A DNA stretch of 64,000 nucleotides from the sequence record NC_015251.1; one strand, written 5' to 3'. Positions 50,286 to 52,313 of this stretch are shown one piece after another. The notes under the pieces were generated by a model, which had not been told where the DNA came from, searched no databases, and was given only the letters and a program-made list of their open reading frames with translations. Each line of letters begins with the position of its first letter. Positions within the stretch are counted from its first letter, which is position 1. The translations under genes and the position numbers were made by a program.

Positions 50286-50369
50286 GGGGATGTGGTGAAA
50301 TTGGCAGACACACCAGATTTAGGTTCTGGCGCTTATAGCGTGACGGTTCGAGTCCGTCCATCCCCACCA
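50286..50369 (+). tRNA. tRNA-Leu(UAG)
   Basis: GGGGATG/CATCCCC, loop TT-TAG-GT, CCA. Confidence 0.95.
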
Positions 50370-50385
50370 GATTTAAGGGATAACT

Positions 50386-50454
50386 ATGAAAATCCTCAAA
50401 ATGAAGAAATACCCTTACACATGTAGATTGTGTGGTTGGGATTATGAAAATTGA
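50386..50454 (+). CDS. Cys-containing micro-ORF A (22 aa)
   Basis: MKILKMKKYPYTCRLCGWDYEN*; RBS AAGGGA; paralogue at 51913. Confidence 0.6.
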   Translation: MKILKMKKYPYTCRLCGWDYEN

Positions 50455-50555: not shown

Positions 50556-50630
50556 TTTGTATGTAACTCAATTGGTTAGAGCACGGGACACAAATCCCGT
50601 AGGATGTTGGTTCGAGTCCAATCATACAAA
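50556..50630 (+). pseudogene. tRNA-like element with 6-nt anticodon loop and no encoded CCA
   Basis: TTTGTATG/CATACAAA stem, normal D and T arms, CGGGA-CACAAA-TCCCG. Confidence 0.7.
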
Positions 50631-50641
50631 AATTTCAAGAT

Positions 50642-51259: not shown

Positions 51260-51335
51260 GGGCGTGTAGTTCCAGCGGTAGAACGATGGACTGTTAATCC
51301 ATGTGTCGGGGGTTCGAATCCCTCCACGCCCGCCA
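51260..51335 (+). tRNA. tRNA-Asn(GUU)
   Basis: GGGCGTG/CACGCCC, loop CT-GTT-AA, CCA. Confidence 0.95.
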
Positions 51336-51337
51336 AT

Positions 51338-51456
51338 TTTGTGTATAGTTTAATCGGTTAGAACATGGTGTGGATCGACTCCACCTTTGCTGAATAGCGA
51401 AATAAATAACTGGCTTTAGTCGCCGGATGGTGCGGGTTCGAATCCCGTTACACAAA
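51338..51456 (+). ncRNA. 119-nt tRNA-like RNA with expanded multi-hairpin anticodon region
   Basis: TTTGTGTA/TACACAAA acceptor, canonical D arm and GCGGG-TTCGAAT-CCCGT T arm; TGGTG/CGCCG stem encloses an insert of about 50 nt. Confidence 0.7.
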
Positions 51457-51464
51457 AAAGTTTA

Positions 51465-51558
51465 GGAAGGTCAACCCGACGGTAGGCGACGGGAGCGGTC
51501 TTGAAAACCGCCGAGGCGTAACAGCGCCTTGTGAGTTCGATCCTCACATCTTCCGCCA
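51465..51558 (+). tRNA. tRNA-Ser(UGA)
   Basis: GGAAGGT/ATCTTCC, loop CT-TGA-AA, long variable arm, GCCA. Confidence 0.92.
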
Positions 51559-51912: not shown

Positions 51913-52008
51913 ATGAAAATAATCAAGGTAAGAAAGTATCCATATACATGCAACGTTTGTGGTAACGACTATGACGACTGTTATTGTGGATTCTTGTTAA
52001 GTGTGTAA
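51913..52008 (+). CDS. Cys-rich micro-ORF B (31 aa)
   Basis: MKIIKVRKYPYTCNVCGNDYDDCYCGFLLSV*; CxxC...CxC. Confidence 0.6.
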   Translation: MKIIKVRKYPYTCNVCGNDYDDCYCGFLLSV

Positions 52009-52014
52009 ATAGAT

Positions 52015-52313
52015 TATAATTAGGTTATGGGCTCTAGATTCCTAGTCAGTTTCGCACCCTATAATCGCAACGCTGGTTCGAATGTAGATGTTTTGACCGA
52101 CTATAAACTACAGCCAGCAACGTATAAAAATCAGGATAAGTCCTGTAAAATCCTCGGTTGTTTCTAAGTCCCTCTCTGGTTCGTGAGTAATCAGGCGATA
52201 CTAATTATATAAACGGGGTAAATAATTTAAGCGAGATTAGGGTTGCAAACCGAAATCGTAAGTCGTCTTGTACATACCCACTCAAAGAAGGTATGAGTTT
52301 ACAAGGTGCGCCA
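52015..52313 (+). ncRNA. candidate multi-stem ncRNA with interrupted T-arm motif, ending GCCA
   Basis: 9-bp long-range stem 52015-23/52201-09 and several hairpins; no credible ORF. Confidence 0.5.

Follow-up and report, generated by a model that had tools for sequence, protein, structure and literature searches.

A tRNA-like gene with a conserved two-hairpin hinge insert in the tRNA array of Aeromonas phage 65: probably a tRNA mimic or an unusual insert-bearing tRNA

The stretch of DNA analysed here, called the window, comprises 64,000 nucleotides (nt) of sequence record NC_015251.1 and comes from Aeromonas phage 65 (NC_015251), a T4-type phage of 235 kilobases (kb) in the genus Ishigurovirus. 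Window positions are record positions minus 62,000. Inside the tRNA array of this phage, at 51338-51456 on the plus strand, lies an element of ~119 nt which has the parts of a tRNA gene together with an additional structured domain. It begins 2 nt past the CCA of tRNA-Asn (51260-51335), in register with the tRNA array, and its end is separated from tRNA-Ser(UGA) (51465-51558) by 8 nt. The RefSeq record of phage 65 has no annotation at the element, nor at the adjacent tRNA-Ser(UGA), so that both genes fall into one annotation gap. In the record of the sister isolate 65.2, the element is listed as a 'tRNA-OTHER' of 118 nt.

The element has been compared in four variants: phage 65 itself, avDM6, which is the sole divergent homologue in the phage collection (87% identity over the element), and two metagenomic variants, X1 and X2, taken from Logan contigs of four metagenomic runs and aligned to the element. 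The tRNA body can be read directly. The acceptor stem, TTTGTGTA/TACACAAA (51338-51345 paired with 51449-51456), is the same in all four variants and consists of seven pairs (51339-51345 / 51449-51455) with T51338:A51456 (U-1:A73) as a possible eighth. Positions 51346-51365 hold U8 and A9, the D arm GTTT-AATCGGTTA-GAAC (51348-51364; GUUU-AAUCGGUUA-GAAC as RNA) with A14, G18G19 and A21, and then A26, as seen on direct reading and in the ARAGORN drawing; the sole variant change in this region is a 1-nt D-loop deletion in avDM6. On the 3' side, an invariant 5-nt variable loop, AUGGU (51427-51431), carries G46 and a U48 able to pair with A15. It is followed by the T arm GCGGG-UUCGAAU-CCCGU (51432-51448), with one loop change (A to G) in avDM6, and by the acceptor 3' strand UACACAA plus A73 (51449-51456). 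The tertiary-core nucleotides (U8, A9, A14, A15-U48, G18G19, G46, T54-A58) are all canonical by direct reading. The element ends without CCA and continues into AAAAG. CCA is encoded by 16 of the 16 canonical tRNAs of the cluster, and the only other gene in it that lacks CCA is an odd tRNA at 50556-50631.

At the hinge between nt 26 and 27 of this body lies an insert of 44 nt (51366-51409) made of two hairpins and an A-rich linker. The first hairpin, H1, GG(U)GUGGA-[UCGAC]-UCCACC(U) (51367-51386), has an invariant loop. The second, H2, UUUGCU-[GAAU]-AGCGAA (51386-51401), has the loop GAAU, GAAC or GAAA depending on the variant. The linker AUAAAUAA (51402-51409) is unpaired in all constrained and consensus folds and reads UCAAUAC in X1 and UAAAUAC in avDM6. 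Downstream of the insert, the stem-loop H3, CUGGC-[UUUAGUC]-GCCGG (51410-51426), is an intact anticodon arm with a stem of 5 base pairs (bp; 51410-51414 / 51422-51426, CTGGC/GCCGG as DNA) and a 7-nt loop with U33, UAG at the anticodon position, U37 and C38. H3 is assigned as the anticodon arm because it is a local 5-bp stem with a 7-nt loop, is backed by the variants, and is followed by a 5-nt variable loop; this leaves 51366-51409, between nt 26 and 27, as the extra material. When these 44 nt are ignored, all the parts of an elongator tRNA are present (acceptor, G18G19, 5-bp/7-nt anticodon arm, U33, variable loop and T arm), and deleting the insert in silico gives a 76-nt cloverleaf which ARAGORN calls as tRNA-Leu(tag).

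The variants support this layout. X1 differs from phage 65 by 12 substitutions and one deletion, all within 51367-51425 (including G51367A and G51425C), and X2 by T51411C. In H1, pairs 67:85 and 68:84 show a G-C/A-U swap between avDM6 and X1, and in H2 of avDM6 and X1, G-C has changed to A-U and U.G to U-A. The H3 pair 51411:51425 is U.G in phage 65, C-G in X2, G-C in X1 and G.U in avDM6. Counted by hand, there are ~5 double-compensatory events and three wobble-to-Watson-Crick changes, all pairs of the hand-drawn middle part are canonical in four of four variants, and no pair-disrupting substitution has been found in the four-variant comparison. RNAalifold run without constraints on the four variants recovers the cloverleaf together with H1, H2 and H3. 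Between phage 65 and avDM6, the tRNA body is ~98% identical and the neighbouring tRNAs are mostly 95-100% identical; the insert sequence diverges with its stems kept, and the changes concentrate in the insert and H3. The G.U pairs form on the plus strand alone, which indicates selection at the RNA level. Unconstrained minimum-free-energy folds of single sequences have been set aside as uninformative on their own, since they favour, at near-equal energy, a rival long helix between H1 and the T arm, and the z-scores are just -1.4 to -2.0. The locus is not a product of chance, being in register in the tRNA array, conserved in relatives and recovered as a consensus fold, and the comparative data establish an architecture that is well supported for the four-variant sample.

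The initial annotation of this element, made from the letters alone, is partly confirmed by these data. Its acceptor stem, D arm, T arm, absent CCA and length of ~119 nt are all borne out by direct reading, and the general picture of a tRNA-like gene with a whole elbow and core plus an extra structured domain is supported. The insert is also not a private, unconserved insertion, as it is kept with compensatory changes in avDM6, X1 and X2. The position of the insert and the number of its hairpins had been misread: the anticodon loop was thought to be replaced by a three-hairpin insert, and what is found is an intact anticodon arm with a domain of two hairpins at 26/27. The proposed hairpins TGGA/TCCA and TTTGC/GCGAA survive as parts of H1 and H2, and ACT/AGT gives way to the 5-bp stem of H3. 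The proposed anticodon stem TGGTG/CGCCG (51366-51370 / 51421-51425) does not hold up. Taken at face value, it would describe an ochre-suppressor tRNA (anticodon UUA) with a 43-50-nt insert in its anticodon loop that is removed as an intron, and in both phage 65 and X2 the intron option of ARAGORN, which the initial annotation had suggested running, does report tRNA-Stop(tta) and an intron of 43 nt. The same option gives Leu(tag) for X1 and Tyr(gta) for avDM6; the anticodon shifts with the variant, and the calls are therefore forced fits. Covariation contradicts the model as well, because two of the five stem pairs are gone in avDM6 (TGATG/CGCCT) and X1, leaving three. In the same two variants the loop CTTTAGT becomes CCTTAGT, with loss of U33, and the model also implies a 6-nt variable loop. 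A suppressor tRNA of this kind is hardly credible.

Standard detectors are silent on the element: ARAGORN with default settings calls neither a tRNA nor a transfer-messenger RNA (tmRNA), and the Rfam tRNA model RF00005 gives no match to it at the gathering score or at E<=10. Over 51320-51475, Rfam at E<=10 returns T-arm fragments alone, with no tRNA, YrlA, ribozyme or intron family. Several known RNA classes have been rejected on these grounds. For tmRNA, the T arm is the sole match (8.5 bits), and ARAGORN reports none. A group I intron has more than 200 nt and a P1-P9 core; the insert has 44 nt and no Rfam intron match. The small self-cleaving ribozymes (hammerhead, twister, pistol, hatchet, hepatitis-delta-virus-like) have no Rfam match at E<=10 in 51320-51475. 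Reading CUGAAUA...GAAA as a hammerhead fails on direct reading, as G8 of the core is missing, and the sequence is not conserved.

The known distribution of the element is narrow. A blastn search matches phages 65, 65.2 and avDM6 and no others. The Ceceduovirus relatives are without it, and there tRNA-Tyr directly follows tRNA-Asn. A sequence-pattern scan of IMG/VR for close relatives found phage 65 itself plus 16 chance matches, an element-specific pattern scan of GTDB genomes found no match, and no relative of the element was found in metagenomes with a D-arm pattern. Within the window there are no further copies of the insert of the kind a repeat or mobile-element origin would leave. A promoter and terminator scan gave nothing significant inside the element, with counts equal to shuffled expectation. 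The linker has been rejected as a T4 late promoter or MotA box, having the wrong spacing and not being conserved in X1 and avDM6. In the searched literature, neither the element nor the larger insert class described below is mentioned, the one related report being that of 'enigmatic introns' in the tRNAs of Lak megaphages (bioRxiv 10.1101/356790; PMC6784885).

Scanning with a D-arm-anchored pattern that has an over-long distance between D and T arms brings up other long tRNA-like genes. In metagenomes the output also includes two mitochondrial-looking false positives and one ambiguous locus (L028), and on GTDB genomes the same pattern finds one copy of locus L031 in a metagenome-assembled genome (MAG) of Prevotellaceae. 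With the commonest D arm, a scan of IMG/VR gives 85 loci, 64 of them with a full acceptor stem. A brute-force deletion test on such genes reveals a large class with a 42-56-nt insert after nt 28 (28/29), which splits the 5' strand of the anticodon stem. With the insert removed, these genes are perfect tRNAs with a 5-bp Watson-Crick stem, U33 and R37, and their isotypes include Lys, Asn, Ile-like, His, Pro and Val. The insert follows a common plan: it opens with G|UA and a leader rich in A, forms a hairpin of 6-10 bp, then shows the conserved motif (UA)CAGCAA(Y), and closes with a further 7-12 nt. A junction helix of the form 'GUA...UAC' occurs in about 10 of 16 members, shows no covariation and is not claimed. 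Besides the IMG/VR loci (L039-L123), the class occurs in cultured jumbo phages, namely Serratia phage BF (296567-296688) and its relatives, Cronobacter GAP32, Pectobacterium CBB, Yersinia fHe-Yen9-03/04 and several Erwinia phages, where members are annotated as tRNA-Lys, tRNA-Phe, OTHER or Undet; the inserts go unmentioned in the papers on CBB and phi-pp2. The KVP40-like Vibrio phage D479 has four such genes (L124:1181-2615). In a second type of insert (L065, L077, L078, L098, L101, L109, L051, L025:3454-3572, L031, L125), the motif G(U/C)UUACUU(C) is found close to the 3' end, and one example, in a Prevotellaceae MAG, has a tRNA-Glu(UUC)-like loop with the insert at 37/38; this may be the type of the Lak-phage 'enigmatic introns'. 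A third type is a eukaryote-style 37/38 tRNA-Tyr intron, with two examples on contigs that carry a giant-virus MAG label. Large phages thus often have short inserts in their tRNA genes, and most of these combine a position at 28/29 with a hairpin and CAGCAA.

The element resembles the 28/29 class in that a tRNA gene of a large T4-superfamily phage, perfect in other respects, has a structured insert of 40-56 nt in the region of its D and anticodon stems, and in its order of a hairpin and then a single-stranded A-rich stretch, with the motif region at a similar distance from the anticodon arm. It differs in that its insert lies at 26/27, has two hairpins and leaves U37. In the deletion test, the phage 65 and avDM6 inserts fall at p=0-1 (26/27) with Y37, whereas class members fall at p=3. 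At the site of the CAGCAA motif, the sequence is UAGCGAA in phage 65, AAGUAUG in avDM6 and, with the spacing of the class, CAGCAAU in X1, and throughout this lineage, X1 included, the equivalent segment is the paired 3' strand of H2. Because of its position, its two hairpins, its U37 and a motif site that is paired and unconserved, the element is treated as a distinct variant and not as a member of the class.

Phage 65 encodes enzymes, outside the window, that bear on the fate of such RNAs. ST65p392 (NC_015251 215183-216229) is a class-II nucleotidyltransferase of the CCA-enzyme/poly(A)-polymerase (PolyA_pol) family, the RNA ligase RnlA (Rnl1) is ST65p333 (192134-193309), and the polynucleotide kinase PseT (Pnk) is ST65p409 (223011-223922). 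As the canonical phage tRNAs all encode CCA, the two CCA-less tRNA-like genes would yield the sole phage transcripts in need of CCA addition. CCA repair is an equally good reason for ST65p392.

Judged from its sequence and structure, the element probably encodes either a tRNA mimic or an insert-bearing tRNA of an unusual kind. The best reading, which we hold tentatively, is that phage 65 and its close relatives have here a working gene derived from a tRNA, with a class-I body and a hinge module, whose product would be a stable, unspliced, non-decoding tRNA mimic analogous to the species 1 RNA of T4. Ordinary decoding is improbable because of U37 and C38, the type-I body, the missing CCA and an anticodon that is redundant with that of tRNA-Leu(UAG). 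A purine at position 37 is near-universal in elongator tRNAs, and U37 and C38 are invariant in four of four variants. Phage 65 has a canonical type-II tRNA-Leu(UAG) at 50286-50369 with the loop UUUAGGU, and the element loop UUUAGUC has U33-U34-A35-G36 in common with it.

We infer the expression, processing and partner of the element RNA as follows. The RNA would be transcribed together with the tRNA array and released by RNase P and 3' trimming, since its acceptor, D and T arms are canonical. CCA might then be added by a host enzyme or by the phage class-II nucleotidyltransferase. The insert would most likely be retained in a mature RNA of ~118 nt, which would display an L-shaped body, a tRNA-Leu(UAG)-like loop spoiled at 37/38 (U, C), two extra hairpins and the invariant UCGAC loop. 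Its target would be some tRNA-binding partner, which might be a phage factor or a modification enzyme, or a nuclease with which the host attacks anticodon loops; for this partner the RNA could act as decoy or adaptor. By direct reading, GACU in the H1 loop (51377-51380) is complementary to AGUC in the H3 loop (51418-51421), and pairing between the two could mask the anticodon loop.

Several points weigh against the mimic. The comparison rests on four variants of one narrow lineage. Matches of 4 nt are no rarity between two loops of 7 nt each, and the loops are identical throughout the variants, so that no covariation bears on the loop-loop contact. Without the insert, the cloverleaf is perfect and has every nucleotide of the tertiary core, as would be expected if the insert were an intron, and in other large phages, too, perfect tRNAs are restored when short inserts are removed. 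The phage-encoded RnlA, PseT and nucleotidyltransferase could mature a spliced tRNA. These last observations are also what speaks for the view that the element is an insert-bearing ('intron') tRNA. There, the 44-nt module would be cut out at 26/27 by an endonuclease or by self-cleavage, leaving a 76-nt decoding tRNA with anticodon UAG; PseT and RnlA would heal and seal the halves, and CCA would come from a phage or host enzyme. In work attributed to Schwer et al. in 2004, T4 Pnk and Rnl1 are said to be able to substitute for yeast tRNA ligase in splicing, and the sealing of a spliced tRNA by RnlA and PseT could be imagined here. The ARAGORN call of tRNA-Leu(tag) on the shortened element, the numerous phage tRNA genes with 40-56-nt inserts and the Lak-phage introns cited above count in the same direction. 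However, splicing would yield a tRNA that still has U37 and C38, combines a Leu anticodon with a type-I body, and is redundant with the phage tRNA-Leu(UAG). We know of no splicing endonuclease in bacteria or T4-type phages, and no candidate RNA endonuclease was found in phage 65, its two annotated 'endonucleases' being CapR/DUF723 and UvdE (DNA enzymes). A bulge-helix-bulge motif was not seen on inspection, without a dedicated tool, and no known ribozyme was matched in Rfam at E<=10. The position and sequence of the insert are also unlike those of the common 28/29 class, with the CAGCAA motif unconserved in this lineage. On balance, the splicing of this particular gene, with the later healing, sealing and CCA steps, is the leading rival of the mimic, yet unlikely. 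A broader proposal, that a phage-borne, protein-dependent tRNA splicing pathway acts on the element as well as on the tRNA genes with inserts that are widespread among T4-superfamily and jumbo phages, is quite unlikely. An endonuclease, or self-cleavage guided by the insert hairpin and motif, would cut between 26/27 and 28/29, and Pnk and Rnl1 would heal and seal. If this were true, the classic 'tRNA repair' enzymes of T4 would, as a second role, serve bacterial viruses constitutively as a ligase for tRNA splicing, and the hinge insert could be a switch that holds the tRNA inactive until processing.

The non-canonical anticodon loop, the lack of CCA, the silence of the standard detectors and the absence of the element from the Ceceduovirus relatives would all fit a disabled, functionless tRNA gene that took up 44 nt by a selfish or accidental insertion and is decaying. 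Yet the tRNA body is as conserved between phage 65 and avDM6 as working tRNAs are, compensatory changes keep the stems of the insert, and the H1 and H3 loops are invariant in the four variants, all of which makes decay very unlikely. The initial annotation had also raised a Y-RNA-like species, that is, a partner of a Ro-type protein comparable to bacterial YrlA with its tRNA-like module. Some observations outside phage 65 point that way. One uncultured phage of 223 kb has, directly downstream of a Ro-like gene (L030:5136-6710, minus strand), a tRNA-like gene whose insert lies in the hinge region and which has C37 (L030:4831-4922, minus strand; L024a is the same locus as L030). The Ro-like gene encodes a DUF2828/DUF7788 protein of 524 amino acids (phrog_850, 'RNA-binding protein'), some phage homologues being annotated as 'Ro-like RNA binding protein'. 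On another contig, a YrlA-like RNA (L025:2789-2903; 49 bits, E 1e-9, below the Rfam gathering score) lies ~550 nt upstream of an insert-bearing tRNA-His-like gene. The element itself gives no YrlA match at E<=10, and its RNA ends in an acceptor stem where YrlA ends in the Ro-binding stem. No Ro-like DUF2828 homologue was found in the 214 of 235 kb of phage 65 that were covered, nor does one from phage 65 appear among the 45 best phage hits. A Y-RNA role for the element is highly improbable.

The array holds other oddities. The second CCA-less tRNA-like gene, at 50556-50631, is called 'tRNA-???' by ARAGORN and scores 45.5 bits with the Rfam tRNA model. Its acceptor stem, TTTGTATG/CATACAAA, is rich in U and 8 bp long, and its anticodon loop, CACAAA, has 6 nt. 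Like the element, it begins its acceptor with the U-rich UUUGU and lacks CCA; its D loop and G49.U65 pair also match those of the element, which makes it a probable paralogue. The gene is found in phage 65.2 (as tRNA-OTHER) but not in avDM6. The tRNA-Ser(UGA) at 51465-51558 scores 47.7 with the Rfam tRNA-Sec model, where the gathering score is 47. Its anticodon is UGA, not UCA, and the tRNA-Sec call is most likely a false positive. Gaps of the array contain two unannotated, paralogous mini open reading frames, at 50386-50454 (MKILKMKKYPYTCRLCGWDYEN) and 51913-52008 (MKIIKVRKYPYTCNVCGNDYDDCYCGFLLSV), which share a KYPYTC..CG.DY motif of zinc-ribbon-like look; the avDM6 gap that matches the first is just 7 nt. 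In avDM6, ARAGORN reports a '???' tRNA with a 4-nt anticodon, ggtg, just upstream of tRNA-Pro (L002:2817-2888), and makes no call at the corresponding site of phage 65. Between tRNA-Ala and tRNA-Pro, the gap at 52040-52140 holds a lone T-loop-like GCTGGTTCGAATG and, ~40 nt on, ACAGCCAGCAAC, and may be a degenerate tRNA-like remnant.

Among known systems, the archaeal non-canonical tRNA introns are alike in being short inserts away from 37/38, and unlike in that no bulge-helix-bulge is seen in the element on inspection. YrlA has a tRNA-like module that is recognised by tRNA enzymes (PMC4201824). The element shares with YrlA and the Y RNAs (RF02553) the general design of a non-coding RNA containing such a module; it differs in topology, which is permuted in those RNAs, and, as described above, in Rfam matches and in the lack of a Ro-like gene. 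The canonical tRNA-Leu(UAG) and the element have U33-U34-A35-G36, A73 and the A15-U48 pair in common. Unlike that tRNA, the element is type-I with no long variable arm, has U37/C38 in place of G37/U38, lacks CCA and carries the 44-nt insert.

The closest parallel in outline is found in T4, whose tRNA cluster contains rnaC (139 nt) and rnaD (119 nt). The initial annotation had likened the element to T4 RNA D; a likeness to a T4 cluster RNA stands, but the match is to rnaC (species 1 RNA), as rnaD is without a T-arm consensus on reading. An alignment of rnaC from five genera has 19 covarying pairs (double changes), and the consensus runs from an acceptor-like stem with two conserved U.U mismatches through a large internal domain, an A-rich linker and a conserved hairpin with the invariant loop CGUCAA to the T arm. 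The structure of this family (L021:1409-1547, minus strand; alignment A2) could, as a matter apart from the element, seed an Rfam-style family. The two RNAs show no detectable sequence similarity, and blastn with rnaC matches Tevenvirinae exclusively. In contrast to the element, which has the full tRNA core and a 5-bp/7-nt arm, rnaC is without a canonical D arm or G18G19, has the acceptor mismatches, a 6-nt hairpin loop and ~1 nt in place of the variable loop. What they share is that each is a gene of 119-139 nt in a T4-type tRNA array, with 5' and 3' ends that form an acceptor-like stem, which stacks on a canonical T arm, with internal covarying hairpins, and with an A-rich linker and then a conserved hairpin before the T arm. 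No function has been assigned to rnaC to date (PMC3014915; PMC12685909), and for fifty years the T4-type phages have had the tRNA-cluster RNAs species 1 and 2 without an explained function. Beside them, the element is a compact case in a cultured phage with a host that can be grown in the laboratory, combining a canonical core, a defined 44-nt two-hairpin hinge module and natural covariation. It makes testable whether, and by what, such inserts are removed in bacteria, and whether phages make non-decoding tRNA mimics, for example against tRNA-targeting defences.

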